A stretch of 37,692 nt of DNA from Dimorphilus gyrociliatus (taxonomy: Eukaryota; Animalia; Annelida), in NCBI GenBank assembly GCA_904063045.1, contig CAJFCJ010000184.1, positions 10,212 to 47,903 of the forward strand. Direction: 5' to 3'. The position numbers were made by a program, and so were the translations under genes. Shown here in pieces: positions 1,393 to 33,432 of this stretch. Each line of letters begins with the position of its first letter. The stretch's first letter is position 1. The notes beneath the pieces are model-generated. The model was not told where the DNA came from. It searched no databases and saw only the letters and a program-made list of their open reading frames with translations.

Positions 1393-1995
1393 ATGACAAT
1401 ATTATATACTCAGATACTAGAAACACCTAATTTAAACTATTTGAATAATGTTTATTCAAAACATGGAAGCTTCCTTACGCAAAGTTCAAAAATAACATCA
1501 AATTTAAGAACATTTGTCTCTACAAATAAATTTGATAATTCCAAACTTTATTCTCACAAATTTAAAGAATATTTGTATTATTTTATGAAAACAGAAAGTC
1601 ATTTAATCTGTTTTATTAGTGATGACTCTACTAATAAAAGCATTGCGGATGTTTTCATGAAAAAAATAATTGATAACATCCGAATGAATCCTCATTATGT
1701 CACAAATAACAAAGAATTAAAGAGTTTAATGGATAGTTTTAATGATTACTATAATGATGAGGAAATAAAAGTCGAAATAATGAAAGCTAGAAACGTTGCA
1801 GTAGAATCTCTTAATAAATTACAAGGAAGAGGCGAGGTTCTTGAAAATTTAACAAATATTGCTGACGAATGGAGTACAAAGATTAAAAGATTCAAAAAGG
1901 ATGTAGAAAAGACACAAAATGGAAACTATTTTGTTATGGGAGGTGTTCTTTTATTTGTAATTTTTGTTTTCTATTTAATTTACTTAAGATTTTAG
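1393..1995 (+). CDS. Longin-domain R-SNARE (VAMP7/Sec22-like synaptobrevin)
   Basis: 200 aa ORF with an N-terminal longin-like region, an R-SNARE motif (ESLNKLQGRGEVLENL) and a C-terminal transmembrane helix (FVMGGVLLFVIFVFYLIYL). A CCCCC motif precedes the ATG. Confidence 0.85.
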   Translation: MTILYTQILETPNLNYLNNVYSKHGSFLTQSSKITSNLRTFVSTNKFDNSKLYSHKFKEYLYYFMKTESHLICFISDDSTNKSIADVFMKKIIDNIRMNPHYVTNNKELKSLMDSFNDYYNDEEIKVEIMKARNVAVESLNKLQGRGEVLENLTNIADEWSTKIKRFKKDVEKTQNGNYFVMGGVLLFVIFVFYLIYLRF

Positions 1996-3301: not shown

Positions 3302-3880
3302 TTAGGGATGGCGTCTTGTATGATTATTTTTAGCAAAACCTATATTAGGAATATATGTATCTCCTATAATTAGTTTTATATTATCGTTAATGCGAAAATT
3401 ATGTAACTCTGTATATATTCTAATAAAATTTTTGTATATTTCTCTTGGTTGCTGTAGAGTATTTATACGTTCAAAGTTGACATTTTTTTGTTTAGTTTCT
3501 CTAAACAACACAAAAGTTTAAAGGTTTTAGCATTGTGGATTGTATTTTTATGCTGATATCGTATATCATCATTTAACTTAGTCCATTATCTGTTCCTTCC
3601 AATCCCTTTCTTAACATCGGGCTTTAAAGTTCTATTTAATCTCTTTATTAGTCCCCGAGATCGAGGACTCCTTGATTTTCCTGTTATATGGGATGCAATA
3701 AGTCTACTACATAACTCATTTATACTATTCTTAAAAAATTCATTGTTATTATTAGTATTTAGTATGACCCATGACCCTTCAATTCCATATACAGTGTGAA
3801 AAAAGGGATCTCCCATTTTTTTGTTGAATCATAAATAGCTTGGTTGTTTTATTTTGGATAACTATATATCAAATCTTTTA
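3302..3880 (-). pseudogene. Degenerate rve-type integrase remnant (Ginger/GIN-like or LTR-derived)
   Basis: ORF 3586..3816 reads ILNTNNNNEFFKNSINELC..HITGKSRSPRSRGLIKRLNRTLK, a decayed TDNGxEF...PQSQGxxERxNRTLK core. Downstream fragments (NTIHNAKTFKL; GDTYI..FAKNNHTRRHP) resemble integrase C-terminal regions. Catalytic residues are eroded. Confidence 0.6.
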
Positions 3881-4019
3881 TAACTCAATATTAACCCTTT
3901 TCTATATGTTTAATTTTCCTATTGATTTTTTTTCTAATTATCTTAATAAAGGACGTCTTTAAGACTGTAAAGATAGTGTTCGCTATCATTTATTTCAAAA
4001 TATGTCTTCTCTTTACTCT

Positions 4020-4660
4020 ATAAAGTAAAAAACAAACTATTTTTTTAAAAAAGCCAGTTTCTGACATGTTTCTACTGATGTTTTATTCCAATTATCTTTT
4101 ATAGCAACTTTTAATTTTTTTCTTATTTTAAATATTTTATTTCGGCCTTAATTATTGCTCACAAGTTTTCTATAGAGGTACAATCAGGAGATTGAGCAAG
4201 TTAGCTTTCAACTTTGATATCACACTCTTTATAAAATTTCTTTGCTAGCTTACATGTATGCTTGGGATCGTATCTTGTACAAAAATAAAATCGACTAATT
4301 AGATTTTATAGACTCGGTTAACAAACAAGCGCCTAGCATGTTGCAATAATACGGTGCATTTATTTTTATGTCGATAAATTTCAGTTCTCCAACACCATGA
4401 TATGAAAAACAGCCCCAAACCATCACAGAACCACCTCAAAATTTTATAGTCTTCTTGATATTTTGAATATCAAGTTTAGAAAACTTTGTACGCCATACTT
4501 TTAGACTTCTATCGGAAAATATAATAGTTTTTAGCGTGCGTTATGGTATTTACACCCACCTCATATTTGCATTGTATATCTAGCTTCAATATGCCTTGGT
4601 TGTAAGAGGAACTTAAAACATGGTGTAAAGGCTTTGATGTCCATTTTATTCAAGTAATTT
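4020..4660 (-). pseudogene. Old Tc1-family transposase remnant
   Basis: Minus-strand fragments IKAFTPCFKFLLQPRHIEARY, GGSVMVWGCFSYHGVGELKFID, DPKHTCKLA, AQSPDCTSIENL and WNKTSVETCQKL are colinear with the transposase at 5296..6156 and broken by stops and frameshifts. Confidence 0.85.
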
Positions 4661-5088: not shown

Positions 5089-5295
5089 CAGTCTGTAAAA
5101 AAAAATGATACACCCCAATTTTTGTCATAAAAATACAAAAAATAGGATCATACAAGATTTATAATGGTATATTTAGAATGTACTTATAAAATTAAACCTT
5201 ATTTTTCAATTATTTTTTTTTGTTATTTGTTTTTTTAACGGTTAACCATAAAAAATAAATTTTGATTGTAAAAAAAAAAATGATACACCTATAAT

Positions 5296-6311
5296 TTATT
5301 TATCAATATGCTTTCCCTTGGCTTTATATAATAAATAGGCTCGTTTTTTAAACGATTTTGAGAGTTTTTGACATTGCTCTATCGTTATTTCGTTCCATAT
5401 CCTTCTAATTTCATCTTTTAGATCATTTTTTGATCGAAAGGTTTTATCACTGATTTTACCTTTTATATAGCCCCATAAGTTTTCAATTGGATTGCAATCT
5501 GGTGATTGTGCTGGCCATGACAATAATTTTACATTGTTAGTGTGAAAAAACTCCTTTGCTAGCTTGCTAGTATGCTTAGGATCGTTATCTTGCATGAAAA
5601 TGTAATCTGAAATGCCCATTTTATCGATCGAACTAAACAGGGAGCCTGACAACATATTACAATAATATGCAGCATCCATTCTTTGATCAATAAACACAAG
5701 TTCTCCCACCCCATAATAGGAAAAACAGCCCCACACCATTACTGAGCCTCCACCAAACTTCAACGTCTGATTGATATTCTCTGATTTTAACCTCTCATCA
5801 GGCTTTCTCCATACTTTAACCTTTCCATCGTGATTATAAAGGTTAAATTTGCTTTCATCGGAAAAAATTATCTTCTTACAGTCCTTTTCCTTCATCATAA
5901 TCCAGTCTCGAGCATGGCTAAATCTAGAAATAATGTGATGAGGCCTCAAAAGGGGCTTTTTTGTGGGACTATAGGCATGTATATTATATAAATTTAAATA
6001 TTTCTTTATACACGAGTGACTTATGGTGATAGCCAATTTATTTTGTATAGATTCAGCTTTTTTCCGTAAAGATAATTTTCCATTTTTAGAATTTTCTGAT
6101 AACAAAGTCTCCTCAAGATCATTATTCAGTTTGCTCGGTCTACCATTCTCCTTCATATGATCTATACACCCATTTTGTTATACTTTCCAATTACTTTCTG
6201 AGCTGTAGAGACAGGAATTTGTAATTTTTTAGCAATTTGTCTTATACTAAATCCACTACTCCGTAAGCCAATCACTTTTGCTTTAAGCTCTAATATATAA
6301 TGTTTACCCAT
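5296..6311 (-). CDS. Tc1 DD34E transposase with one frameshift near 6170
   Basis: Motifs IIFSDESKF, MQDNDPKH and SPDCNPIENLW, with 34 residues counted between D and E. The N-terminal HTH (MGKHYILELKAKVIGLRSSGFSIRQIAKKLQIP) starts at 6311 in a different frame from ORF 5296..6156. Confidence 0.9.
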
Positions 6312-6551
6312 AATGGGGGTAGTTTCTCAGGTTCTTATATACCTTTTTGGAGGGAAAATGAGGTGTATCATTTTTTTTTTACAATCAAAATTTATTTTTT
6401 ATGATTAACCGTTAAAAAAACAAATACCAAAAAAAAATAATCAAAAAATAAGGTTTAATTTTGTAAGCCCATTATAAATATATCATTATCAATCTTTTAT
6501 GATACTATTTTTTGTATTTTTATGACAAAAATAGGGGTATATCAATTTTTT

Positions 6552-7538
6552 GGTAAAAAGGATTTTTGGGGTACAGCTATATTTGCTTCTTAAAAAAAAT
6601 AAACATATTTTTAGATTTAAAACGTTTTTTTATTAATTTTCATCCGAGCCAAAATTTTTAAAAAAGGATTTTCCGTTTTTAGAAATAGATAATCTTTGAT
6701 ATAGGATTTTATATTTGGTTTTATGTTGCTCCCTCTTGTTTTTAAATAGTATTTGAGCCATTTCCATTGATTTTCTATATTCTGAGTGTGTTTTTCTTTG
6801 TTTTTAGGGTCTACAAATACATCCTTGTGTTAATAGTAAAGTGACCATATTCAAGTAACTTCACTCTATTATAGCCTTTCCACTCGTCAGTTATAATAAC
6901 GGAATATTCTTCTACATTCTTTATTATTATTTTAGATAGTGTTTCTTCATCTCTTTTTGTGACAGGCTCAAAGAAACACTCTTTTGTAGCTCTAAAGAAA
7001 AACCACCTACTACCCATATCTACTCTATTAGTCTTCCTTTGTTATTTTCCCTTTTACTAACGGAACTCTCATCAATTTCAACGATTCTACTGCCGCCGCT
7101 ATTTTCTTTTCTGAAAAGTCATTATATCGTCTGCGAATGATTTTTAAATACTATTATATAATGTTTTAGTGATATTATATTTATTATAAATTTGAATTGG
7201 CGACGTTTTTATACTCCATTCGTATATTATAAAAATAATGTTTTTTATCGACGATTTAATATTGTCGAAATAAGACATCTTACATATTGAAACTCTTATA
7301 TTATTACATTTTCTCGTTTCACATAGCCAAATGAAACCATATATATTATGATGTGGTACCAAAACCATCGCTTTTTTACAGCTTTTACACAAAAATTTTT
7401 TCTTCAATAAACCCAAGTCCATCATCCATGATAAAAATCTCTCGGATCAAATGAAATAGTAAATAATTCCAATCTCGAAACCACTATTGGGGTCAAATTT
7501 TAAGCAAATATAGCTGTACCCCAAAAATCCTTTTTACC
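6552..7538 (-). mobile_element. Degenerate Merlin transposon nested in the right TIR of the Tc1
   Basis: 37 bp TIRs GGTAAAAAGGATTTTTGGGGTACAGCTATATTTGCTT (6552-6588 and 7502-7538) and an 8 bp TSD AATTTTTT/CATTTTTT with one mismatch. Broken ORFs carry the zinc-finger region (CKSC..CETRKC), IVEIDES and VIITDEWKGY. Confidence 0.9.
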
Positions 7539-8025
7539 CATTTTTTTCTACAGGCTGTAAATACAAGATCTGTGAATAGAAACTCAAAATATACACTAAT
7601 AAGTAGCTTGATTGTAAAGGGGTAACCAACTAAGTATATATAAACGATATAGTAAATCATGATACTCGTTTTAATCCCTATTTACAAGAGCTACTATACA
7701 GCAAATCGAAGTTACTGGGATTTAATGTAAAATCCTATCCGACATCATCCAAAATACTAAATAACGATAATATTAATTTGTTAGCTGTAAAATTTTTATA
7801 TAAAAAAATCTAGACATGAAGCTTATACTAAGCTATCATCCTAATGATTTATTAAAATGAACTATGCTTTTATTTTCGGATATAATCATTTTTTTTAAGG
7901 ACTGGAAGTCTTCTTTCTCAATTTCTCTATTTTTATAAAAACATTGTTTTTAATTGAAGCAGGTCATATTTTAAAGGCAATGGAAAAATAGTGTCCGAGA
8001 AGTCTAAATTTTAATCCAACAACAT

Positions 8026-8157
8026 TTAAAAAAAAGCATTCAGTTTAAAATCAAGTTACATAAAAAATTCATCAACTAACTATCAAAGAAAATTTTCAGC
8101 AAACATCAACTAAAGCATCTGGGATATATCCCACCTTACCTTTCCAGGTATTGATTT
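8026..8157 (-). mobile_element. Solitary, severely 5'-truncated LINE 3' tail
   Basis: Diverged copy of the 11789-11915 tail (CATCAACTAACTATCAAAGAAAA..CAGCAAACATCAACTAAAGCATCTGGGATATATCCCACCTTACCTTTCCAGG). Confidence 0.85.
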
Positions 8158-8332
8158 TCATTATAACTTCTAGCTTTAATAATTAAAATCGATGAATGTT
8201 ATGACTACAAAAAATAATTATCCCCTTTATTTTTATCTTTATTATCATTCATCTGTTCTTGAAATAGGAATGGCTGTATGTTGTTAAAGTAAAATATTCC
8301 AGATAGTTTATCATCCTCTTTTATCATATTTA

Positions 8333-10378
8333 TTAAATTTTTGTCCATAGTTTTTGTAGAGACGTATATTTTCTCAAATTTATCATACTTTTCGTATAAA
8401 TTATATCCATATGGTTTAAAAACGTATTGTCGATTATAATACGTTCAATACCTTTGATTTTACTGATTGCAAATAGCCTACCAGAACCGATTCCACAAGA
8501 GCTCAAATTTAAAGTTTTAAGGTTTTTTAGTTTAGAAAAATTATGCATATCCATGTCGTGTAATTTATTATTATATCCTAAATTCAGAATCTCTAGACTA
8601 GTAGCACTATCTATTTTAGACACTGATTCCCTATCTAGATTGCAATTCTGTAAAGAAAGACTTTTTAACTTTGGAAGTTTGATTATATGATTTACTATTT
8701 TTGTAAAATGTTCGTTATTTAGACCCACATTAGATATAAATACACAACTGAGGGGTCTAAGCGAAGTGATATTGTTTAACCCATTCTTAATAATACAGTT
8801 ATTTATTCCAACACTTTTGAGCTTATGAAGTTTTGTAATGACATATAAATCCGTTATAATAGTATTACTTATACAATCTAGATATAAAACTTCTATTTCT
8901 TTTAACTCTATAATGTCCCTAATACTATTTCCTTCTACACTAAATCTAGAAATATATAAGTTCTTTAGATTTGGAATCTGTGCTATTAGTTTTAAATCAA
9001 GCTGAGTTAGAGACTTATACAAGGTTAAACTTAAGGACATTAGTGTTTTGGGAATATTTGTAAAAAAATCGTTGTGATTTAGCGAACAAATGATAAAACG
9101 TAAATCTTCAATATTCTTTAACGTTTTTAAATCATCTTGCATAAGAATATTGTAAGATATATTATTAGATTCAAGATTTATACTTTTTAGGTTTAATAGA
9201 GAAACCGTTTTCAAAAAAGGAAGTAATCTTAATAAATTGGTATCTTGAAGGTCCAAAGTTCTGAGAGCAACGAGATATTTTAGGGAGTTGTTATTGTTAG
9301 GTTTATAAAGTCTATCTAAGTAAGGAATATGACACCCTCTCAAGCTCAAATTTTCAAGTTTTTTTAGCTTTCTTACCCCCATAATATTTTCCTCTGTAAA
9401 ACAAAAATTGTAGCTTAAATCTATTGTTACTAAATTCTCAAGCACATAAATATTATCTAAAGCATCAGATTCTGGTAAACTACACTTACTAAGACGCAAA
9501 ATTCTTAACATTTTTAAATTAAGAATCGAATACAAAACTTCAGTAGTAATAGCATTATTCCCGCTCAGGTCTAAATTCACAAGTTTTGTTAAACTAAAAC
9601 AAACCTCCAATAAGAACCCACCAGAATTTATTTCACAATCACGCAAACTGAGACTCTCAAGTTTATCATCTCCTAAAATACTTTCTATTAAAGTATTCTT
9701 TATATCTGCATTTTCATTTAAATTTATCGTTTTAACACTTTTTAAATATAGTAGTACTCCACTCAAGAAGTAAGTAGAAAGGCGACAGTGTGATAGATTT
9801 ATATTTTCCAGCATTTCCAACTTTACAATATCATACAAATCTGCTTGATTTATATTATAATTATGTGATAAATTAAGCACCTTCAAGCTTTTTAGCTTGT
9901 GAATTCCTATTAAACTTCCAGGTTTGAGCTGACAACTAGAAAGATTGAGTGAAATTAAGTTATATAATTGAAATATATTTATCATATCTTTTTTTTCTAA
10001 CTCTGTATTTTTCGAAATTGATAAACCACAGATATTAGATTTTCTCTTTATATTCGATAAAAAGTTCGCTTCTAAAGAAGAGTTGTTTAAAAAAACTATT
10101 CTTATATTCTTTAAGTCGAAAATAGACGTTAAACCATTTTTTGTTAAATTATGTGTATGCAAATGGCAGCTTGTATTATAATAAGATATAAAGTAGTAAA
10201 TACTGCAAATTTTGACAAAACTAAGATTATTAAAAAAACATAAGGGATAAAAACTAGATATTTTTGTTATCCATATATGGAATATTAGAAACGAAATGGC
10301 AGTTATTTCTAACCAACGAGATATAATAACAGGGCAAGTAGAAGTAGGATCCAAAGAGGATTTAATGAATAAAAGCAT
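8333..10378 (-). CDS. Leucine-rich repeat protein; 5' end abuts a retroelement tail
   Basis: 681 aa ORF with more than 20 LxxLxLxxN/C repeats of ~24-25 aa. The annotated ATG (10376-10378) lies inside the retroelement tail sequence, so the true start is uncertain. Confidence 0.85.
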   Translation of the reverse strand: MLLFIKSSLDPTSTCPVIISRWLEITAISFLIFHIWITKISSFYPLCFFNNLSFVKICSIYYFISYYNTSCHLHTHNLTKNGLTSIFDLKNIRIVFLNNSSLEANFLSNIKRKSNICGLSISKNTELEKKDMINIFQLYNLISLNLSSCQLKPGSLIGIHKLKSLKVLNLSHNYNINQADLYDIVKLEMLENINLSHCRLSTYFLSGVLLYLKSVKTINLNENADIKNTLIESILGDDKLESLSLRDCEINSGGFLLEVCFSLTKLVNLDLSGNNAITTEVLYSILNLKMLRILRLSKCSLPESDALDNIYVLENLVTIDLSYNFCFTEENIMGVRKLKKLENLSLRGCHIPYLDRLYKPNNNNSLKYLVALRTLDLQDTNLLRLLPFLKTVSLLNLKSINLESNNISYNILMQDDLKTLKNIEDLRFIICSLNHNDFFTNIPKTLMSLSLTLYKSLTQLDLKLIAQIPNLKNLYISRFSVEGNSIRDIIELKEIEVLYLDCISNTIITDLYVITKLHKLKSVGINNCIIKNGLNNITSLRPLSCVFISNVGLNNEHFTKIVNHIIKLPKLKSLSLQNCNLDRESVSKIDSATSLEILNLGYNNKLHDMDMHNFSKLKNLKTLNLSSCGIGSGRLFAISKIKGIERIIIDNTFLNHMDIIYTKSMINLRKYTSLQKLWTKI

Positions 10379-10485
10379 TTAATTAAACATCAACTTACAT
10401 AAAAAACTCATCAACTAACTATCAAAGAAAAATTTTCAGCAAACATCAACTAAAGCATCTGGGGATATATCCCCACCTTACCTTT
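10368..10485 (-). mobile_element. 5'-truncated LINE tail (type A)
   Basis: Near-identical to 11790-11907, including the GGGGATATATCCCC palindrome and ACCTTACCTTT. Confidence 0.9.
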
Positions 10486-10572: not shown

Positions 10573-10604
10573 CACTTAAAAATTTTTTTAAAATATTTTT
10601 TTTT

Positions 10605-11665
10605 AAATAAAAGCATTTAATTAAACATCAACTTACATAAAAAACTCATCAACTAACTATCAAAGAAAAATTTTCAGCAAACATTAACTAAAGCATCTGG
10701 GGATATATCCCTGCCATACCCTTCCGGGCTTCGACTCTCGGAGGTCTTGAGGAGTGGCTATTACCACTCCCCACAGTTTGCGGACAGGCCTGCTCCCTTC
10801 AGAGCTAGCACCCACCCATTCCACATACACCTTGCGGTGCCTGCAGCGCGACACCTGTGCATCTCGAGTTACGGCAACAGCTGCACAGGCCACCGAGGAC
10901 TATCGGCATCCCGTTCCCCTCCTAGGAACACCTCCATCCAGCTACCCGAAGACAGAGGTTTTTGGTTGTTGTCTGACTCTTAGCTACTCATAATCACTGC
11001 TTACTGGACTTAGGTCTCTGCCAGTTATACTCAACATCTACACTTCAATCAGCTTGCCTATCTTCATGGCAAGGAGCTTAATCATTGCATCTCCATTCCT
11101 AACTCGTTCTGGCGAGCGGGTCCAGCTAGGCCATCCAGATACCTCTTCTATTGCCAGACTCCGCTATGATACCTACCTCTACATGGTACTCCTGCCGACC
11201 ACTTCTACTTTGTTTGCGGCGCTGACCTAGGCAGGGTCTAGGGCGTTCCTTTGCTTGGGCAATCCCCGGCCGTGGGTCGTGAGGACTTCGACCCAGTCGT
11301 GCAGATACCTTCCCATCCTGAGTGATCCTACCGTCCCTGTGTCAGGGGTGTCTACTCATACCCAACCACAGGCAGGCTCACTGACTTCCCTGTCTCTGCC
11401 TCATACACAAGCCTTCACTAAGCTCTTCAGCTCATCTGCCTTCGAGTCCCTGCATGGTACTCTGCACACCCCACCTCACTACTAGTCACGCATCCTACTA
11501 CGCTAGTTTTATAGTATCTTACCAAGGAGTATCCTCACAGTATCGACTCAGACCCAGATAGATTGTGGGTATCTGGGGATGCCTAGTATCCATGCTTGCA
11601 CTGTCATTAGCCGTCTCCCGACGTTACCAAGACGAACCACGTGGAGGTTACAGTGCTGTCGTCTC
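10605..11665 (-). mobile_element. Non-autonomous non-LTR element (SIDE/SINE-like), copy 1, with ribozyme head and LINE-shared tail
   Basis: ~1060 bp, GC-rich, near-identical to 16385-17428, with no credible long ORF. It shares with the LINE the 3' tail, CTCGGAGGTC, and the ~40 bp CACCGAGGACTATCGGCATCCCGyTCCCCTCCTAGGA (LGGERDADSPR on the minus strand). Confidence 0.85.
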
Positions 11666-11760
11666 AGCTCTTCAGCTCATCTGCCTTCGAGTCCCTGCAT
11701 GGTACTCTGCACACCCCACCTCACTACTAGTCACGCATCCTACTACGCTAGTTTTATAGT
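11421..11760. repeat. 95 bp direct repeats (11421-11515 and 11666-11760) flanking the ribozyme segment
   Basis: AGCTCTTCAGCTCATCTGCC...CGCTAGTTTTATAGT occurs twice here and once more at 17191-17285. Confidence 0.95.
11598..11665 (-). ncRNA. HDV-like self-cleaving ribozyme, intact copy
   Basis: Minus-strand RNA: GAGACGA(P1) CA GCACUGU(P2) A ACC(P3) UCCACGU(L3) GGU(P3') UCGUCUU(P1') GG(P1.1) UAA CGUC-GGGA-GACG(P4) GCUAAUG(J4/2, catalytic C) ACAGUGC(P2'). A G1-U wobble lies at the predicted cleavage site. Folded by hand. Confidence 0.9.
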
Positions 11761-11937
11761 AAAAAAATTTTTAAAAAAAATTTTTTTTAAAATAAAAGCA
11801 TTTAATTAAACATCAACTTACATAAAAAACTCATCAACTAACTATCAAAGAAAAATTTTCAGCAAACATCAACTAAAGCATCTGGGGATATATCCCCACC
11901 TTACCTTTCCAGGCATTGGTTCTCGGAGGTCGAATAT

Positions 11938-13047
11938 TTAGCTCTCCTGATTAGAAAGGCTATAAGCCCTTCTCTTCAGGATAGCTTGAAGATACCTGGC
12001 TGTTGAGGCCAGGACCAAATAACACCGAGGACTATCGGCATCCCGCTCCCCTCCTAGGAGCACCCCGACTGTGGTATCACGATCGAGGTTTTTGTTAAGT
12101 ATCGAAGAGTATATTTCTATACTCCTCCTATCCTCTTCGTATCCAGGACAATCAAGAAGTAGGTGATAGATATCTTCTTCTACTCCTCTCTTGCACACTA
12201 GACACTTAGAGTAAAATTCACTGGATACCTTTCCTAGCATGACTAGGCGAGGTACAAAGTGGAATGCTCCTGCCCTCAACTTGAGGAGAGCATACCATCC
12301 AGCGCCTCTGTACCTCAAGGATGCTCTGGGCACGTTCACATCAGCGACTCGCCACCTATCTCTCATCCTTGAGATAACGCTAGAGTGTCTAGCGATTTTC
12401 CTACTCTCCAGACTCCGCTTGGCAATAGAAGGAGCTTGCCTTGCCTCACTGTCCAGTGCAGTAGGCGCATACCTTTTGAGCCATCGGGTTGTACGCGTCA
12501 CCCATGTTGTTTTCTTTGCTTTTATAGGATTATCAATGAAGCTACTCATGTATGTACGTGAGTATCTCCACTTCCTATAGGCCCTGGTTCGCATCCTGGC
12601 AGCGAACACATCGACCATCTCAATGCATAAGTCCTTATACATTGATAGTCTGTTGAACATCTTTGAGACATTCATTGCCATTGCTACTCCGTTGTCCATG
12701 ATCCTCTGCAGTCTTCTGCATCGAGTGGAGTTCATACCAATCATTTCTACACCATAGGTTACGATTGGCATGAGCACTCCTCTGAGAACCCTTACCTTGT
12801 GGTACATTCCAATGGAGGGATTACGCAAGAGTGTTTGACACTGGAGCAGTGCCAATCGTCCCTGCTCCACTCTCCTATCCAGATGAGCATCGTCACCAAG
12901 GTCATTGGATATCTGGATACCAAGGTAGGTATAGGACTGCACCATCGGAATCACTTGATTACCATAGTGTATGTCACTATCCACCAGTGGTTGGGACGCT
13001 CCTACTATCATGTAGCCACTCTTTGCGCCATTGACACCCATCCCCAT
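11938..13047 (-). CDS. LINE ORF C-terminus (RT thumb region and CCHC zinc knuckle)
   Basis: SYTYLGIQI, YGVEMIG and the CLVC..H..DC motif, continuing the RT ORF. Confidence 0.9.
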   Translation of the reverse strand: MGMGVNGAKSGYMIVGASQPLVDSDIHYGNQVIPMVQSYTYLGIQISNDLGDDAHLDRRVEQGRLALLQCQTLLRNPSIGMYHKVRVLRGVLMPIVTYGVEMIGMNSTRCRRLQRIMDNGVAMAMNVSKMFNRLSMYKDLCIEMVDVFAARMRTRAYRKWRYSRTYMSSFIDNPIKAKKTTWVTRTTRWLKRYAPTALDSEARQAPSIAKRSLESRKIARHSSVISRMRDRWRVADVNVPRASLRYRGAGWYALLKLRAGAFHFVPRLVMLGKVSSEFYSKCLVCKRGVEEDIYHLLLDCPGYEEDRRSIEIYSSILNKNLDRDTTVGVLLGGERDADSPRCYLVLASTARYLQAILKRRAYSLSNQES

Positions 13048-14252
13048 ATGCTACACCACTGTTGTAGCTTAATGAGGTTGAATGCCATATCCTCAGCGCT
13101 TTCTGCTAGCAGTACGGTGTCGTCGGCGAAGAGCAGTCCAGGTACTCTTTCAGCCAACCCATCTACCTCTACACCTCTCATTCCTGAGAAGATGTCATTA
13201 ATATAGAGATTGAATAGGAGGGGAGAGAGTGGACAACCTTGTCTCAGCCCCACAGTATAGTCGAAGCTATCTGTCATAGAGTCCCCTATTCGTACTCTAC
13301 ATTGCACATTCCTGTACAATCTGCTAACAAATCCGCGGTAGCATGCAGAGACTCCAATATCTGCCATCTTACCAAGCAGTTTGTCGTGAGGCACCATGTC
13401 ATAGGCTTTCTTAAAGTCTATGAATACTACAAAGGTGTCCTTACCTTTTATTTTTCTTCTCTTTAGAAGCTCTGTGAGAGTAGATGCTTGTGTTACGCAT
13501 TCCTCGAGACTTCTGAATCCTGCTTGGTATCTGCCTAGGAGATTATTCTCTTCCACCTCTTGTCTCATTTTTATTTCTACTATCTTAGTAGCAATCTTGA
13601 GCTGGGAAGAGATTAAGGATATCCCCCTGTAGTTGGAAGGATCACTCCTCTCTCCTTTCTTGAAGATAGGAACAATGATGCTAACATTGTCCCTAGAGGG
13701 AATGTCTTGGTTAATCAGTTCATTCATCTGAGAGACCATTGCCTTAGTCATCAGGCTTCTTCCCTCTCTATCACCCTCCAGGAGCTTATAGAACTCTGAT
13801 GGTATCTCGTCTGCTCCTGGCGCCTTGTTTCGCGGTGTTACTTTGATTGCTAAACGTACTTCAGGCCATTTTACGGTGATAGATCCTTGTATTACTGGGA
13901 TGTCCCTATATTGACCTTGTGAGAGTGACTTGAAGTAGCTGTACCAGGAGTTTAGGATTTGATCCTTGGTGACTGCTAACTTATTAGTCTGTGGATCTCT
14001 GATAGCAGCATTACTGACTGCACCTCTTACAGCTCCTCTGAAAGAGTTGATCCACCTCCACATGTCCCGAGACCTGTTGGCAGTCGTAAGGTCTATGCCT
14101 TTCTGGACATACCTATCCCAGTTTTTCTTTCGACAGGCTAGTATGAGTTTTTTGGATCTAGTCCATAGTTCCTCATACTTAGCTTTGTCTTCTTCGGTGT
14201 TCAATCCTGATGCTCTCAGCTTCCTTCGCTGGTCAATGCATCTGATTGTCAC
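13008..14252 (-). CDS. LINE reverse transcriptase domain (fragment of a frameshifted polyprotein)
   Basis: 414 aa ORF containing the non-LTR RT motifs. It joins ORF 11938..13047 by a frameshift at a G-run near 13040 (QQWCSIWG/MGVNGAKS). Confidence 0.95.
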   Translation of the reverse strand: MTIRCIDQRRKLRASGLNTEEDKAKYEELWTRSKKLILACRKKNWDRYVQKGIDLTTANRSRDMWRWINSFRGAVRGAVSNAAIRDPQTNKLAVTKDQILNSWYSYFKSLSQGQYRDIPVIQGSITVKWPEVRLAIKVTPRNKAPGADEIPSEFYKLLEGDREGRSLMTKAMVSQMNELINQDIPSRDNVSIIVPIFKKGERSDPSNYRGISLISSQLKIATKIVEIKMRQEVEENNLLGRYQAGFRSLEECVTQASTLTELLKRRKIKGKDTFVVFIDFKKAYDMVPHDKLLGKMADIGVSACYRGFVSRLYRNVQCRVRIGDSMTDSFDYTVGLRQGCPLSPLLFNLYINDIFSGMRGVEVDGLAERVPGLLFADDTVLLAESAEDMAFNLIKLQQWCSIWGWVSMAQRVAT

Positions 14253-14429
14253 CTTATCAAGGATAACTGTCCTCTTCTCCTCTTTGAAGTCATAGAGGTT
14301 GAGATTATTCAGTATCCTCTTTGCAGTGGTACCATCTCTGGCTCATCTGTCCAGTGCTTATGATGGATGATCCTTTCCCACTGCTGGGCCATTCTCTTCC
14401 TACTTACTATACTCTTTGGCTGTTCAGCA

Positions 14430-15258
14430 GGTACTTGAAGCCCTGTGATCTTGATTAGAACTGGTTTATGATTGGACAGATCCCAGTTCTCGATCACTTG
14501 TTGACTAATAGGGCTTTCACCTTTAGTCTGGACAAGGAAGTCTATAGGAAATCCTCGTCTGTTCCCGTCGACTCTCCATCAAGTCCTCCTTGTCATTGTG
14601 AGGATCTCAGGGTTAGCAAGGGTTATTTGCTCCGCTAATAACCGCTTCTGCACAGTCTCAGGCTTGGAGTTACAGTCCCCTACGGTGACCACCTCGTCAA
14701 ACCGATCCTTGTGCTTCCTCAGCAACGCACCAAGTCTCTTGTATGCCTGCTTGCGGTTATCGAGTCCATGAGGAATGTATACATTGACACACAGTACCTT
14801 CTTAGGTCTTGTGTCAAGAGCAACTGCTATGAAATTGCTATCTACATGGACTAGGGTGACTGGTTCCTAATCCGGTTCCTGACAGCAAGGAATAGTCCTC
14901 GCTTGCCCAGGTCGTCCTCTTTGTCTGAGGAGTATATGGTGTAGCCACCTATCTTAGGTGTTCTGCCTGCCCATAGAGTCTCCTGTATGGCTACAATGTC
15001 AGGCTTCTCGCGCGACAGGTATAGCCATATCTCAGACAATTTGGTTCGGATGCCATTGATGTTATAGCTAAGGATCTTGAGAGTTTCGATCTCTTGCTTA
15101 GGACATCGTGTGGTCTTACTCCGACCTTTGGTGGACTCCTTGATCCACCAATTCTCTCTTCTAGCTAAGGCTTTTAGCCTATCATTGCTAACAAGAGGCT
15201 GTTTGTTGACTATTACATCTAGTCTTTGGCAACCATTTGGTTGCCTTATTCGCTTCAC
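14430..15258 (-). pseudogene. LINE apurinic-like endonuclease domain, frameshifted
   Basis: Motifs are split across ORF 14851..15258, an unlisted frame (VNVYIPHG..VTVGDCNS) and ORF 14309..14497 (WDLSNHKPV). Confidence 0.85.
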
Positions 15259-15791
15259 CTTGGCCTGCTTGAGGCCGAGGTGTTTTCAAGCTTGGAGCTC
15301 ACCAGGTCCCTTTGACCCATGGGAGTCCCCACAAACAATACTTTCTTCCAGTCTCTAGGCTCTTATTCCCAGCCCCTGGTAAGCCAGGCTGGCGGCCATT
15401 CATGATCGTCGGGCTGAGTCAACCTTCTCAGCCCGGTAAAAGAACCTTCTGGGTTCTCTAGAACCCTTCAGGGGTGGCCTTGTCCAACACCCTGGAAAAT
15501 GCTATGTTTGGGCCTCTTTGGCCCATTAAGTAGACATTGTGGCTCCTCGCCCTTCGAGCCACTCCTCGAGCTGGGCCCTTTTGGGTGCCTCAGCATGACG
15601 AAGCCTTCATTGATCAGCGCAGCATAAACCCTCTTTATTGTGAGGTTAGCTGCTCTGATCTCCAGCTTGTCCATCCATGTCCTCACCTGACAGGTCATGG
15701 ATATTCTTATTTTCTTTTTCTTTAGAATCTCCATCACCTGTTCAGGTGAGGTAAAGACTGGTACCTGCAGATATGCATACTTCCAGTATGA

Positions 15792-16384
15792 NNNNNNNNN
15801 NNNNNNNNNNNNNNNNNNNNNNNNNNNNNNNNNNNNNNNNNNNNNNNNNNNNNNNNNNNNNNNNNNNNNNNNNNNNNNNNNNNNNNNNNNNNNNNNNNNN
15901 NNNNNNNNNNNNNNNNNNNNNNNNNNNNNNNNNNNNNNNNNNNNNNNNNNNNNNNNNNNNNNNNNNNNNNNNNNNNNNNNNNNNNNNNNNNNNNNNNNNN
16001 NNNNNNNNNNNNNNNNNNNNNNNNNNNNNNNNNNNNNNNNNNNNNNNNNNNNNNNNNNNNNNNNNNNNNNNNNNNNNNNNNNNNNNNNNNNNNNNNNNNN
16101 NNNNNNNNNNNNNNNNNNNNNNNNNNNNNNNNNNNNNNNNNNNNNNNNNNNNNNNNNNNNNNNNNNNNNNNNNNNNNNNNNNNNNNNNNNNNNNNNNNNN
16201 NNNNNNNNNNNNNNNNNNNNNNNNNNNNNNNNNNNNNNNNNNNNNNNNNNNNNNNNNNNNNNNNNNNNNNNNNNNNNNNNNNNNNNNNNNNNNNNNNNNN
16301 NNNNNNNNNNNNNNNNNNNNNNNNNNNNNNNNNNNNNNNNNNNNNNNNNNNNNNNNNNNNNNNNNNNNNNNNNNNNNNNNNNNN
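15792..16384. other. Assembly gap (593 N)
   Basis: Run of N characters. Confidence 1.
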
Positions 16385-17367: not shown

Positions 17368-17428
17368 GCACTGTCATTAGCCGTCTCCGACGTTACCAAG
17401 ACGAACCACGTGGAGGTTACAGTGCTGT
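17368..17428 (-). ncRNA. 5'-truncated HDV-like ribozyme lacking the P1 5' strand
   Basis: Same core as 11598-11658, but GAGACG is replaced by A-rich sequence (AAAAAC), so P1 cannot form. Confidence 0.75.
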
Positions 17429-17507
17429 GTTTTTTATATTTCAAGATCCTCACAGTATGAACTCAACCCAGATAGATTGGGTATCTGGGGTGCTAGTATC
17501 CATGCTT

Positions 17508-17574
17508 GCACTGTCATTAGCCGTCTCCCGACGTTACCAAGACGAACCACGTGGAGTTACAGTGCTGTCGTCTC
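17508..17574 (-). ncRNA. HDV-like ribozyme directly downstream of the LSU rRNA
   Basis: Identical to 11598-11665 except for one missing C in P3 (GUAACUCCACG versus GUAACCUCCACG), which may be a homopolymer error. Confidence 0.8.
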
Positions 17575-17629: not shown

Positions 17630-17883
17630 TAGAACGACGGTAAGGACTGCGCCGTGCCTCAAATGCTCGCTTGCGCTCGCACCTTACAGCAGGCCGTCCA
17701 TGTCGTGTCGTTTTCACGTCCGCCTTCCGACCTTGGGCCCGGTTTCTAGCTTAGAGGCTTTCAGCTATACTCCGGTAGACGTAGCTCCGCGACATGCCCG
17801 TCCGGACAATCGCTCCACCAGTGGTCTCATAGGTCCTTCCTTTCGTACTACTCCCTACTCCCCGCAGTCGTCTGTAGGTAGGA

Positions 17884-17930
<47 letters not shown>

Positions 17931-18515
17931 ATTAGTGGGTGAACAATCCAACACTTCGGCGCTCCTGCACGCCGATGGTAGGAAGAGCCGACATCGAAGA
18001 ATCAAAAAGCCGCGTCGCTTTCTGCGCTCGACGGCCACAAGCCAGTTATCCCTGCGGTAACTTTTCTGTCACCCACCTCACAACTGCGGTGTCAAGGTGG
18101 GATCCCTAGGCCTGGGTTTCCCCGCACGTACTCATCATCGTACGCTCAAGCACTCTCAAGCCCTTATGCTCCACGCGGGTTTTCCCGTCCCGCTGCGAGT
18201 ACCTTCGGTCAGCTGCGTTCTGCTCCTGCAGCTGTGCCGCCCCAGCCAAACAGTCCATCTAGCATCCATCCCCGAGGGTGTGCCATGAGCTCCGACGCGT
18301 AGTGGTCTTTCACTTCCGCGTTGCCGCTCCCACCTCCCTACATCACGTCGCAGCTCACCGCTCTGCTACACTACTGTGAAGCTCAACAGGGTCTTCTTTC
18401 CCCGCCTACATCGCCAAGCCCGTTCCCTTGGCACGTGGGTTCGCTAGTCTGCAGGTAGGGACAGTGGGAATCTCGTCTTTCCATTCATGCGCGTCACCAA
18501 TTAAGTGACGAGGCG

Positions 18516-18554
<39 letters not shown>

Positions 18555-20270
18555 GACCCGCGCTTAAGAGAGTCTCCTCTCCTTCACGTAACGAGCACCG
18601 GGCAGAAATCACTTCGTATCCCTTCACGAAGCTATGTTTTTATTAAACAGTCAGATTCCCCATGCCACCTTGAGTTCCATAAGAACCAACACTTCTCCCG
18701 AAGTTACGCATCCATTTTGCCGAATTCCCTTACCTGCGTTCAACATACGCCAGAGGCTTCTCACCTTGGAGACCTGTCGCGGTTTAAGTACGGTCCCGGG
18801 GCCCGCTCGCGCGTCCTTTTCACTGCTGGGCCCGGCGGCCGCAGGGTCGCCCCCTGCCAGCGGCCCGCGCCCTTCGCTGACTGACTCATCTCCACGCGCG
18901 CGCCGCACGCACCAGAGCCGGATGCTCTGCGCGGCCGGACGGCCCATGTCGAACGCCCGATCTCCCGTCGCCGCTCGGCCCCGAGGGATAGGACTCTTAA
19001 CCTATTTCTCTTTCGCTACAGACCGTGCTCCGTCGCTTAGCACCGCCTCACTCCCTTCTGATCTACATCGCCAGGGAAAACCTTCTCCTCCTCGGCCTTC
19101 GCCATTCTCAGACGAATTACAACTACTGCCACCAAGATAAGCGCTGCCGGCACCTCCACCGCACCTCGCAGTGCGCCTTCCACAGTCCCGGCACGCCCCC
19201 CTACCCGCGGGCGCGCATCGGTCGACGCGTCAGCACCGTCAATTTTAGGGCCAGCTGAATTCCGTAGGTACGTTGTAACACGTTTCTTACCGGCTGCCGA
19301 CTTTCATGGCCACCGCCCTACCGTCTTCATTCACCTACCGCCTTCCCTCTCTGCCACGCCGTTCGGTACCTTATCGCGCCGCCAGGTTGAATCCTCTTCG
19401 CCAGTCCTGCTTACCAAAACAAGCCCACTACGCTCGTCCAAGTCCGCGCTGCGTATGCCACGCCGCGCTGAGCACGTTCGGAGTTCGTTCGTCGCCTTAA
19501 GGCTAAATGATCCTAGTTCTACCGCACTCCTCTTCCACTCGCGCGCTGTCCTGAGAGACATTTCGGGGGGAACCAGCTACCAGACTGTTCGATTGGTCTT
19601 TCGCCCCTACACCCAGTTGACGTCAAAGAGTTGCATATCATTACGACTCGCCACCTCCAGCGCATTTTCATCCGCCTTCGTAGCCACCAGGCATAGTTCA
19701 CCAGTCTATCGGGTCTTAACCACGCCTCTCCACCGCTCTCGCGCGCGTCCGGGGCTCTCTCCCTTCCACTCGCTGCGTAGTTAAACTCCTTGGTCCGTGT
19801 TTCAAGACGGGACCGACTCTGTCGGCTCCACATGCAATTTCACTTTTTCATCATATTCTGTCTTCGGTCACCCTACTAATACGCTATCGGTGTCCACCTG
19901 TATTTAGCCTTAGATGCGCACTGCCACCTCTTCACGCTGCACTACCGAGCAACGCTACTCACTTCCTAGCGCGGCGTCCCTACGGGGCTAACACCCTCTC
20001 AGGCCGGCCCTTCAAGGCTCGCTCGGGCCGCCGCTCCGCTGACATCTCGCCGGGGCGATTACACCGTCGGGCTCCTTCCTCTTCGCTCGCCGCTACTGGG
20101 GAAATCCTCGTTAGTTTCTTCTCCTCCCTTTACTCATATGCTTAAATCAGAGGGGTTCTCGTCACTACTGACCATTCAGGCACGCGCCGTCCTCGCTGCC
20201 GCTCCGGCGCCTCGCTTCCTGCCGCGCCCTTCCTCGCCAGTGGACCCAAACGATCCCTTGCATGTGGCTC
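17630..20270 (-). rRNA. LSU rRNA with fused 5.8S region (ends approximate)
   Basis: 5.8S-like start CAAGGGATCGTTTGGGTCC..GAGGAAGGGCGCGG, then ACCCCTCTGATTTAAGCATAT, CCCGTCTTGAAACACGGACC, CTCTTAAGGTAGCCAAA, the peptidyl-transferase region and the sarcin-ricin loop. No ITS2 is apparent. Confidence 0.97.
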
Positions 20271-20289
20271 TTCTATCTCCATTCCTCGC

Positions 20290-21639
20290 TGATCCAACGA
20301 CAGGTTCTCCTACCGTTGCCTTGTTACGACTTGTATCAGATCTAGAACCCTGCGCTCACTCACTCGTTGTTCGTTCGCACCTGATTCCATCTTCGATAGC
20401 GACGGGCGGTGTGTACAAAGAACAGGGACTCATTCATCGCTCCATACTGAGACAGCGATTACTAGCAATTCCTCGTTCCTGCGCCCCTTCCAGGGCACAT
20501 TCCCTCTCGATCGCATTTCTCTCTCCTTCCTTCCTCCTGCGACCACTGTAGTGCGCGTGCAGCCCAGTCCATCTAAGGGCATCACTGACCTGTTCTTGAC
20601 CCCTCCTTCCTGCGCTTGGCGCGCCAGTCACTCTCGTCGAGGGTCTCACTAATTACCAGACTTAACCCAAGGATCACTCCATTTGTCGTTAACGGCCATG
20701 CACCACTTTCCGACCTATCGCGTACCACGCTCATCCGGTCGTCGGCACTGGTAAGCTGTCCCGCGTTGAGTCAAATTAAGCCGCACACTCCACTCCTTGT
20801 GGTGTTCTTCCGTCAATTTCCTTTAAATTTATCGCTTGCGCGCGTACTCTCCCCGTAGCTCTACTCTAGATTTCTCGTCCCCGTCACACTCGTAACAGGG
20901 CGTAAGCATCGTTAACTGCTGGAACTACTACGGTATCTAATCGTATTCGATACTCCAGCCTACGTCCTTGATCATCGGACTCGCCCCTGGCCAGCGCTTT
21001 CGCCTCAGTTTCTCCTAGGCAGGTCATCGAATTTCACCTCTAGCTGCCTAATAGACTGGCCCCTGGCCGCTCCTCATCCTCTACCGTTCTGGGACATTCC
21101 ACCCCTTGATCGGATGTTTTATACACCAGTTGGCTAGGCAGACTACGGACCTTTTAATCGCAGCAAAAATCATAGACACCCCTGGAGCTGGTATTACCGC
21201 GGATGCTGGCACCAGACTTGACCTCCAGTTACTAGCATCTTGTTTACAAATCCTTCTAAACAAACGTTTCTTCACTACCGCCCTGCTTGCAGGCTTCGGT
21301 AAGTTTCGTGCCTGCTGCCGTCCTTGGACCTGGTAGCCGTCTCTCAGGCTCCCTCTCCGGAATCAAACCCTAATTCCCCGTACCCGTATTCGTCTAAATA
21401 GGCCTTTACCCTACTTACTAACTGATGGGCTGACTTCTTACTCTCCGCCGCTCCGCTATACCTGTAGCCCACTGGCTACACGCCTTGCGTATTCCCCTCA
21501 GTTTCCCGAGGTTGTCCGCCCGCGCAGATCAAATCAAAGTCCGTTACTGAGCCGTACGCCGCTCCCCCGAAGGTTCGCTTACACATGCATGGCTAAATCT
21601 GTGAAACTAGCGTCCACGTCAGACAGAATCAATCTGATT
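20290..21639 (-). rRNA. SSU rRNA (~1.35 kb, microsporidian-type)
   Basis: 5' ATCAGATTGATTCTGTCTGACGTGG, the 530 loop GTGCCAGCATCCGCGGTAA, GTACACACCGCCCGTC, and 3' AAGTCGTAACAAGG..GTAGGAGAACCTG..GGATCA. Confidence 0.98.
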
Positions 21640-32265: not shown

Positions 32266-33432
32266 GGTTAATGGGAATTATAAGGGTTTTTTGAAAATTT
32301 TCAAGGACCCTCCCTTAAAAAATGGTTAATATTAAAAATTTTAATTTTATTGTTCCTGAGTCAGAAATATTATCTTTTTCTGAAATAAAATCATATAATT
32401 TAACTGCTGATTATATAGAATCCTTATCTAGGAAAAAGGATATAATTATGTTTATGGCTAGATGGAGATTATTAAACAACAATCAAATATGTCAACCATG
32501 TGACATAAAGATGTATTTACACGAGGATAGAAAAATAACAGATGGTTTCAAATTTATTTGTAGACAGTGCAAGAAAAAACAATCCGTAAGATATGGAAGT
32601 TTTTTTTATAAATCAAGAATGCCATTAAAAATTTTATTAAAAATCATAAGGAAACTACTTTTTGGAATCAACAAATGTGTGATAGGACACAGTTTTAGTA
32701 TATGTAGAAAAACTGTTTCTAAATGGGATAAAATTATTTTAGAGGCTATTGCCTTAAATTTAAATATTACTAGAACACGTATAGGTGGAATTAATGAAGA
32801 GTGTCTACCTAAAATCGTTGAAATTGATGAAAGTTTATTTTTTAAAAGAAAGTATAATCGAGGAAGGCTATTAGAGCAATGCTGGTATGTTGGTGGAATC
32901 GAAAGAGGTACATCAAATATTTTTGTTGTACAGGTACCTGATAAAAAGAAAGAAACTCTTAAAAGAGTTATATTAGATAATGTAGAGATAGGCACCACAA
33001 TTATTACAGATGAGTGGAGTGCTTATAAAGCTGCTCTGGCAGAGACTGATGATTTTGGACATGAGACCGTAAATCATACATACAATTTTGTAAACCCACA
33101 TAATCCTGATGTGCATACTCAAAACATCGAATGTTTTTGGAGTACGAGTAAAAGAGAGATCAGAAAGCATGTCAATTGCAAGGACTTACAATTTCTTTAT
33201 TTATTACAATCAATTTGGTTTAGAAAAGTAGATAAATTTAAAAGATTTAATGAAATAATAGTTCTCTTCTCTAGTAATTCATATGAGGCAGAGTTCAACG
33301 AATTAATAAACTCTAATTTATAGTTATTTTAATAATTCCTCATTTTAACAAAAATTTTTATTTTTTAGTAATTTTTAAAAATTTTCAAAAAACCCTTATA
33401 ATTCCAAAAAACCCTTATAATTCCCATTAACC
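32266..33432 (+). mobile_element. Merlin transposon with intact ORF
   Basis: TIR GGTTAATGGGAATTATAAGGGTTTTTTG at 32266, with its inverse ending at 33432. The flanking 8-mers ATATTTTT/AAATTTTC form only an imperfect TSD. Confidence 0.9.
32322..33323 (+). CDS. Merlin/ISXO2-like DDE transposase
   Basis: CQPC..CRQC zinc finger, IVEIDES, VGGIERG, TIITDEWSAY, HETVNH and HTQNIECFW; 333 aa without interruption. Confidence 0.95.
   Translation: MVNIKNFNFIVPESEILSFSEIKSYNLTADYIESLSRKKDIIMFMARWRLLNNNQICQPCDIKMYLHEDRKITDGFKFICRQCKKKQSVRYGSFFYKSRMPLKILLKIIRKLLFGINKCVIGHSFSICRKTVSKWDKIILEAIALNLNITRTRIGGINEECLPKIVEIDESLFFKRKYNRGRLLEQCWYVGGIERGTSNIFVVQVPDKKKETLKRVILDNVEIGTTIITDEWSAYKAALAETDDFGHETVNHTYNFVNPHNPDVHTQNIECFWSTSKREIRKHVNCKDLQFLYLLQSIWFRKVDKFKRFNEIIVLFSSNSYEAEFNELINSNL

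Follow-up and report, generated by a model that had tools for sequence, protein, structure and literature searches.

HDV-like (hepatitis delta virus-like) ribozymes are established at the 5' ends of retrotransposons lacking long terminal repeats (non-LTR retrotransposons) in animals (R2, RTE, and Baggins) and trypanosomatids (L1Tc and NARTc). The described systems closest to the one considered here are the 5' ribozyme of R2 and the short internally deleted elements (SIDEs) of R2 in Drosophila and other animals (PMC3774820, PMC3414825, PMC6765202), the Pr77 ribozyme of L1Tc and NARTc in trypanosomatids (PMC3185411, PMC3383444, PMC4035085), and the bacterial and phage HDV-like ribozymes of minimal size, namely drz-Fpra (Rfam family RF02682) and the theta ribozymes (PMC10879173). 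Here we analyze a 37,692-nt stretch (the window) of contig CAJFCJ010000184.1 from assembly GCA_904063045.1, in which a candidate HDV-like ribozyme is read on the minus strand from position 11665 to position 11598. We consider it likely that this is a genuine ribozyme occupying the initial 68 nt of a ~1.06-kb, SIDE-like microsporidian retroelement lacking an open reading frame (ORF), and that it acts by the mechanism proposed below.

The contig (C184) belongs to a 77.9-Mb assembly of 349 contigs. Consistent with the microsporidian context proposed in the initial annotation, the ribosomal RNA gene (rDNA) unit on its minus strand is microsporidian, with the model for microsporidian small subunit (SSU) rRNA (RF02542) scoring 1178 bits. 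The assembly source is given as the annelid Dimorphilus gyrociliatus; if so, the contig would derive from a microsporidian living with that host. Two other rDNA loci, on contigs C222 (locus L011) and C137 (locus L012), were available for comparison. Self-comparison and alignment to these loci give the following order along the minus strand: the large subunit (LSU) rRNA gene, a 59-nt spacer, a partial unit with ribozyme copy A, unit B, a stretch of Ns, the body of a long interspersed nuclear element (LINE), a 96-nt piece of the unit, ribozyme copy C with unit C, and several tail fragments. A unit lies behind the LSU gene, in the same orientation, in all three rDNA loci, with the ribozyme beginning 59–60 nt after the LSU.

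The nested double pseudoknot that had been read from copy C is complete, in that P1, P2, P3, L3, P1.1, P4, and J4/2 are each present, and the initial annotation had both its elements and its coordinates right (Table 1, in which ribozyme base n corresponds to 11666 minus the coordinate, such that G1 is position 11665). The computed duplex energies of P1 and P2 are -7.7 and -9.5 kcal/mol, and the nested halves are stable separately (-14.0 and -15.4 kcal/mol). The P3-L3-P3 core equals the Rfam HDV consensus except for one L3 base, which is C for U relative to RF02682 and A for U relative to RF00094. Two extra bases (UG) separate GCUAA from the 3' strand of P2, and by its place in J4/2, C56 is the putative catalytic base. 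By all sequence-level features assessed, the segment from 11665 to 11598 thus belongs to the HDV-like structural class, with the Rfam score thresholds missed.

Table 1. Coordinates of the candidate ribozyme, its retroelement unit, the partner LINE, and the flanks that meet G1
Feature	Position	Strand	Details
HDV-like ribozyme copy C, intact (candidate)	11598..11665	minus	68 nt; direct reading, sub-threshold full-length Rfam alignments, descriptor match
P1 5' strand, GAGACGA (G1-A7)	11665-11659	minus	pairs with 11635-11629
J1/2, CA		minus	joins P1 to P2
P2 5' strand, GCACUGU (G10-U16)	11656-11650	minus	pseudoknot across P1
A17, unpaired		minus	1 nt between P2 5' strand and P3
P3, ACC/GGU	11648-11646 with 11638-11636	minus	3 bp
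L3, UCCACGU	11645-11639	minus	7 nt
P1 3' strand, UCGUCUU (U31-U37)	11635-11629	minus	closes 7-bp P1, 7/7, G1·U37
P1.1	GG at 11628-11627	minus	complementarity of G38/G39 to L3 C22/C23
UAA linker		minus	3' of P1.1
P4 hairpin, CGUC-GGGA-GACG	11623-11612	minus	4 bp, GNRA loop
J4/2, GCUAAUG	within 11605..11623, block with P4	minus	candidate catalytic C56 = 11610
P2 3' strand, ACAGUGC (A62-C68)	11604-11598	minus	P2 = 7 Watson-Crick bp
Unit C, SIDE-like (putative), non-coding	10601..11665	minus	~1.06 kb; ribozyme head, ORF-less body, 3' tail common to LINE
Copy of unit ~+150 to +245	11666..11761	minus	96 nt, joined straight to G1; 100% identical to 11516-11421
LINE body	11763..15791	minus	APE endonuclease, reverse transcriptase, C-terminal zinc-binding (zf-RVT-like) motif (Pfam)
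LINE 3' tail	11931-11763	minus	
Run of N	15792..16384		between unit B tail and LINE body; LINE 5' end falls inside
Ribozyme copy B	17370..17433	minus	starts at +8, without P1 5' strand; one P4-loop G missing
Ribozyme copy A	17510..17574	minus	heads partial unit; 59 nt 3' of LSU; one C missing in P3/L3 CC run
LSU rRNA, microsporidian	17634..20178	minus	co-oriented, directly upstream of elements (Rfam)
SSU rRNA	20287-21639	minus	RF02542
Flank 1 of G1	C184 copy A and C222		rDNA spacer ending ...GCATGGT(G)
Flank 2 of G1	first C137 copy		unit ~+272..+287 ending ...GTCAGTGAG
Flank 3 of G1	second C137 copy		unit up to ~+163 ending ...CTATAAAACTA
Flank 4 of G1	copy C, 11665		unit +150..+245 ending ...GAAGAGCT

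When a 261-nt segment was searched with the Rfam models, RF02682 (HDV-F-prausnitzii) aligned over its full length starting at 11665 (25.9 bits, E = 0.0048; gathering score 44 bits) and RF00094 (HDV_ribozyme) aligned over its full length at 11667-11598, starting 2 nt upstream of G1 (25.6 bits; gathering score 50 bits). Both models leave P2 and P1.1 unscored. A pseudoknot-aware descriptor was therefore informative in a different way, as it specifies a 7/7 P1, a P2 of at least 5 bp in place, a 3-bp P3, the L3 pattern, P1.1, and C-N-A-A. Its only match in the window is at 11665, compared with 0.003 matches per shuffled window, and it also recovered the intact ribozymes of the sister loci. Within the 78-Mb assembly there are five occurrences of the core pattern, all in rDNA-linked units, and none of the reversed control. 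The expectation that HDV models and descriptors would recover the motif is thus borne out by the descriptor and by the extent of the Rfam alignments but not by the Rfam scores.

The predicted cut, between U-1 (11666) and G1 (11665), matches the 5' boundary of the retroelement to the nucleotide, as the initial annotation had proposed. In the three rDNA loci, G1 is preceded by four distinct sequences whose divergence from each other starts exactly at G1, and three of the four are element-internal pieces. A contig from another sample also breaks off at G1, the 30 upstream letters being dissimilar, and an other-sample contig joins the spacer to unit position +50, representing a 5'-truncated copy. 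The rDNA-proximal site itself shows two different 5' junctions across the three loci. In R2, a reverse transcriptase (RT) that reaches the 5' end of its RNA template is documented to jump to another template. Pieces of the element fused precisely to G1 would be explained by such jumps at an RNA 5' end, and the 96-nt piece that abuts copy C looks like a footprint of one. These junctions support an RNA that begins at the predicted cut, although by themselves they cannot tell cleavage from a transcription start. Unequal recombination was considered as a source of the junctions and rejected, since it would not put three breakpoints on the same base. Finally, the ribozyme is free of variants in two other samples, while neighboring bases vary.

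One sequencing run (X3) bears on the unit as an observation in its own right. Its library type is unlabelled, and its word depth over the unit at positions 6650-7900 of L011 reaches thousands to tens of thousands, with a depth ~6-fold lower in the bin that contains G1. If X3 were RNA, this would fit an abundant, processed unit RNA; contig depths are untrustworthy, and we do not count this as evidence.

To place the ribozyme among relatives, metagenome contigs were scanned with the exact pattern ACCTCCACGTGGT-N7-GG-N6..36-GGCTAA, which leaves P1 and P2 unconstrained. The P3-L3-P3...GG...GGCUAA core is identical at no fewer than 120 metagenomic loci (≥120). Among the matches listed, 92 of 122 have a perfect 7-bp P1, where we estimate ~4% by chance, and 66 of the 74 unique sequences have a P2 of at least 5 bp at the canonical place, compared with 9.5% when strands are mismatched. 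The same listed matches begin P1 with G in 61/74 cases and end its 3' strand with U in 57/74, consistent with a G1·U wobble in the majority of the family (at most 57/74). They also carry NAAC after P1.1 in 70/74 cases, a feature that the pattern did not ask for and that the microsporidian ribozyme has too, and the spacing that they show most often, with 1 nt ahead of P3 and 2 nt behind GGCUAA, is also the one found in the microsporidian ribozyme. At least 49 distinct P1 strands occur in the family.

In an alignment of 12 sequences that includes the microsporidian ribozyme, 95% of cells pair, compared with 65% when shuffled and at most 45% when partners are slid. Thirteen of the 14 P1/P2 pairs vary on both sides and the 14th (G1·U/G-C) on one side only, a result reached by 0 of 500 shuffles, while L3 C22/C23 and the GG of P1.1 are invariant. 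Within the assembly, the six ribozyme copies are near-identical and, together with the lack of ribozyme variants in the two other samples, this means that no covariation comes from the lineage itself. In the proposed check by copies and covariation, copies were found, and P1 and P2 covary in the metagenomic family but not among own-lineage copies. Collectively, these comparisons place the candidate, at the level of sequence, in a covariation-supported HDV-like class used by phages and eukaryotic LINEs.

The genomic settings of the family members differ. Some start at the base directly after a tRNA, which is the theta-ribozyme arrangement. On metagenome contig Ga0182744_1000022 (L084), a transfer-messenger RNA (tmRNA) gene occupies 3680-4052, and an HDV-like ribozyme that shares the core starts at the base after it (4053-4128), a theta-like arrangement on tmRNA rather than tRNA (3680-4128). 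Other members are found immediately upstream of long RT ORFs of LINE-like type with 24–30% identity to the RT encoded here, which indicates that environmental eukaryotic LINEs probably bear this ribozyme head. Contigs L128, L039, L047, L022/L080, L062, and L131 have the ACCUCCACGUGGU...GGCUAA core upstream of such ORFs on the same strand; the ORFs are 600–1700 aa long, some with an apurinic/apyrimidinic endonuclease (APE). A 1031-nt metagenome contig (L021) carries near-identical ribozymes at 61-132 and 933-1004, 872 nt apart and pointing the same way, a layout suggestive of short units in tandem, each headed by a ribozyme.

The initial annotation had placed the ribozyme at the head of a microsporidian retroelement. 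The element that it heads is the ~1.06-kb ORF-less unit running from 11665 to 10601, not the ORF-bearing LINE, with which the unit shares its ~170-nt 3' tail. Unit C is 97% identical to unit B (17428 to 16385), which has ribozyme copy B at its head. On the minus strand of unit C there is no ORF of at least 100 aa, and with a 40-aa minimum only one 69-aa ORF with a GTG start is found. Unit tails of ~170 nt are 86–92% identical to the LINE tail (92% for the unit C tail at 10746-10578) and have a GGGGAUAUAUCCCC hairpin and an A/T-rich end. A second patch of 42 nt (95% identity) is common to the unit and the LINE 3' end. These shared parts, together with the ribozyme head and the ORF-less body, identify the unit as a putative SIDE-like, non-autonomous partner of the LINE.

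The LINE encodes a complete APE endonuclease domain, and from its domain order (Exo_endo_phos, RVT_1, and zf-RVT in Pfam) it is typed as an APE-type element. The RT matches the solved structures of R2 and of L1 ORF2p about equally, and sources refer to relatives as L1- or Tx1-like. The nearest named protein relatives are LINEs of Smittium culicis (37–44% identity); no close microsporidian protein relative was found in the database, and the descriptor detected no HDV-like motif at the loci of the nearest protein relatives, an S. culicis LINE and an ENA contig. Ribozymes were also absent from the fetched stretches of two other LINE copies in the assembly, on C181 (5'-truncated) and C228 (a 72% fragment). 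The run of Ns that covers the LINE 5' end recurs, at ~593–600 nt, in L011 (~6033-6631) and L012 (~5113-5710) and is not a scaffold gap.

Based on these data we propose the following mechanism. The units are always in rRNA orientation behind the LSU gene and behind the LINE, which argues for read-through transcription rather than a promoter of their own. Read-through from the rRNA genes would generate a long transcript that contains the unit. The nascent RNA would then fold, as the predicted structure, the ribozyme family, and the junctions together suggest, and C56 of J4/2 with Mg2+ would cleave 5' of G1, freeing a unit RNA that starts with G1 and carries a 5'-OH. The RT of the LINE may recognize the ~170-nt tail and, through target-primed reverse transcription, produce copies of the unit in trans. 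On reaching the G1 end, the enzyme would sometimes switch template, which could leave the internal pieces that are observed fused to G1.

Several observations weigh against this interpretation. The Rfam scores are below gathering, a search of the whole assembly with RF02682 gave no match at E ≤ 10, and Rfam at gathering thresholds reports only rRNAs across the window; given that silence, covariance model scores alone are insufficient for a claim at the scale of 78 Mb. The pseudoknot-free minimum free energy is no better than that of shuffles (z = 0.22), a measure that is uninformative for a fold that is pseudoknotted. The 12 aligned sequences were pre-selected for pairing, such that the unfiltered counts are the fairer measure, and the covariation rests on the wider metagenomic family. 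The three rDNA loci are 95–97% alike and may be segmental duplicates, which makes site-specific insertion tentative, and no empty target site was found in the assembly; nor was a target-site duplication found, with the spacer flank TAAAATGAACGCATGG present upstream only. All three LINE copies have breaks in their reading frame, and current mobility is therefore doubtful. A metatranscriptome contig covers the unit body but ends at ~+189, 120 nt short of the ribozyme, no contig matched in a second RNA run, and because these runs are contigs, RNA starts are unreadable from them. The frame breaks may be assembly indels, as several differences among copies are changes in homopolymer length, and the C missing from copy A could be a homopolymer error as well. 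Relative to L011 and L012, the copies at 17370-17574 differ mostly by single-base homopolymer losses (CC to C in P3/L3 and, in the P4 loop, GGG to GG), and the breaks in the LINE frame vary from locus to locus; both look as much like long-read assembly error as like decay.

The low Rfam scores and the lack of a genome-wide match at E ≤ 10 would be expected if the motif were a chance look-alike or a dead relic, with an internal promoter or a start of transcription fixing the end at G1. A similarly loose descriptor should yield a handful of chance matches in 78 Mb, as estimated from the shuffled rate, and the first 77 nt of L1Tc are both internal promoter and ribozyme (PMC3383444), so that a 5' end at G1 alone is no proof of cleavage. 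We nevertheless regard this explanation as very improbable. The G1·U wobble, NAAC, GGCUAA, the GNRA-capped P4, and the exact family spacing are all present without having been asked for by the descriptor; the motif matches to the base a boundary set independently by four junctions; the ribozyme is invariant in other samples where its neighbors vary; and all units lie co-oriented right behind a heavily transcribed gene. The constant position behind the LSU could instead reflect co-option by the host, with the ribozyme acting chiefly as a signal for pre-rRNA 3'-end processing or release ~59 nt after the LSU and its retroelement role secondary or extinct. Ribozymes at 59–60 nt in 3/3 rDNA units of the assembly without an empty site, interrupted frames in the partner LINE copies, and the trimming of phage tRNA 3' ends by HDV-like theta ribozymes (PMC10879173), with the same layout in metagenomic members, are all compatible with such a role. 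We consider it unlikely, however, as the rDNA-proximal copy here has a 1-nt deletion in P3/L3, the intact copy C is 6 kb away from the LSU and follows the LINE, and the varied junctions indicate repeated retrotransposition and not a fixed host signal. Moreover, a contig from another sample spans the LSU and a following unit without the first ribozyme bases, and therefore not every unit has a competent copy. A related domestication, similarly unlikely, would have self-cleavage ~59 nt past the LSU make the primary pre-rRNA 3' end and the copy behind the LINE trim the 3' end of LINE RNA. If true, a domesticated retroelement ribozyme would serve to process the 3' end of rRNA, or to terminate it, in a lineage whose RNA processing is stripped down.

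A less remote alternative, which we consider possible but doubtful, is that the ribozyme belongs to the full-length LINE, with an identical copy of its own in the N-covered 5' region, and that the 1.06-kb units are internally deleted LINEs. The shared 42-nt patch and ~170-nt tail follow the pattern by which R2 SIDEs arise from internal deletion (PMC3414825), and the LINE 5' end does lie under Ns. The visible LINE body (15791 to 11932) is otherwise unlike the ~750-nt body of the unit, and the C181 and C228 LINE copies lack the ribozyme in the fetched stretches, although they are 5'-truncated or fragmentary. Such an origin would alter the history of the element and not the action of the ribozyme. 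We retain as the preferred reading a genuine ribozyme at the head of a SIDE-like unit that would be mobilized by a partner LINE.

Other genes on the contig include further mobile elements. A leucine-rich repeat (LRR) protein ORF (8333-10378, minus strand; LRR_4 and LRR_8) lies between copies of the LINE 3' tail (8025-10485 of the window), one upstream at 10485-10368 and the other ~190 nt past the stop codon at 8142-8025, and its listed ATG falls inside the upstream tail; the LRR gene could be carried or flanked by LINE-tail insertions. A Tc1/mariner-type DDE_3 transposase is encoded at 5296-6156 (minus strand), a weak DDE match at 1393-1995 (plus strand), and an ISXO2-like (IS1595) transposase domain at 32322-33323 (plus strand).

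A full-text literature search found no paper that ties microsporidia to HDV-like or other self-cleaving ribozymes, in agreement with the initial annotation, which knew of no earlier description. For microsporidia, the only entries in a 2024 review of rDNA transposable elements are miniature inverted-repeat transposable elements (MITEs). A ribozyme-headed non-LTR element within a co-transcript is already known; what is new here is its occurrence in Microsporidia, the pairing of an APE-type LINE with a SIDE-like unit, and the location in the rDNA 3' spacer. The new host, the APE-type pair, and the spacer position suggest that the R2-style lifestyle, in which an element rides the rRNA transcript and excises itself, arose convergently. 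The junctions fused to G1 would then be traces, in the genome, of template jumps from an RNA end that the ribozyme had made. In environmental DNA, one specific HDV-like core (ACCUCCACGUGGU...GGCUAA) is common to phage tRNA-trailer ribozymes and the heads of eukaryotic LINEs, and the 68-nt sequence is itself a compact ribozyme candidate.

The likeness to R2 is extensive. In both, a non-LTR element that resides in the rDNA unit, co-oriented with the rRNA, begins with an HDV-like double pseudoknot, 5' junctions are variable, and the read-through and self-release proposed here parallel the release of R2 from its Pol I co-transcript. The unit also resembles the R2 SIDEs in being an ORF-less, non-autonomous derivative with a ribozyme head and the 3' end of its partner. 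In contrast to R2, which has a restriction-like endonuclease, lies inside the 28S gene of animals, and has its ribozyme within the first ~184 nt, the system described here has an APE-type partner (Exo_endo_phos, RVT_1, and zf-RVT), lies in the spacer ~59 nt past the LSU 3' end of a microsporidian, and uses a minimal 68-nt ribozyme with a 4-bp P4. With L1Tc and NARTc, both of whose RNAs start with this ribozyme, it has in common the combination of an APE LINE with a non-autonomous partner and the proposed freeing of the element from a long co-transcript. L1Tc differs in being dispersed, in its first 77 nt also being an internal promoter, and in its core sequence, whereas the copies here are few, rDNA-linked, and without sign of promoter function. 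In sequence, the best Rfam match is to drz-Fpra (RF02682), with a near-identical core (ACCUC[C/U]ACGUGGU ... GG-NAAC ... GGCUAA) and a short P4, and metagenomic ribozymes with exactly this core abut tRNA 3' ends in the manner of theta ribozymes; yet drz-Fpra and theta ribozymes process tRNA or mRNA in prokaryotes and phages, while the candidate here heads a eukaryotic retroelement. The genomic and antigenomic HDV ribozymes and CPEB3 (RF00094) share its topology, and its L3 and J4/2 resemble their consensus (CCUCCuCG..., GGCuAA), but its P4 is far shorter and its biology different.

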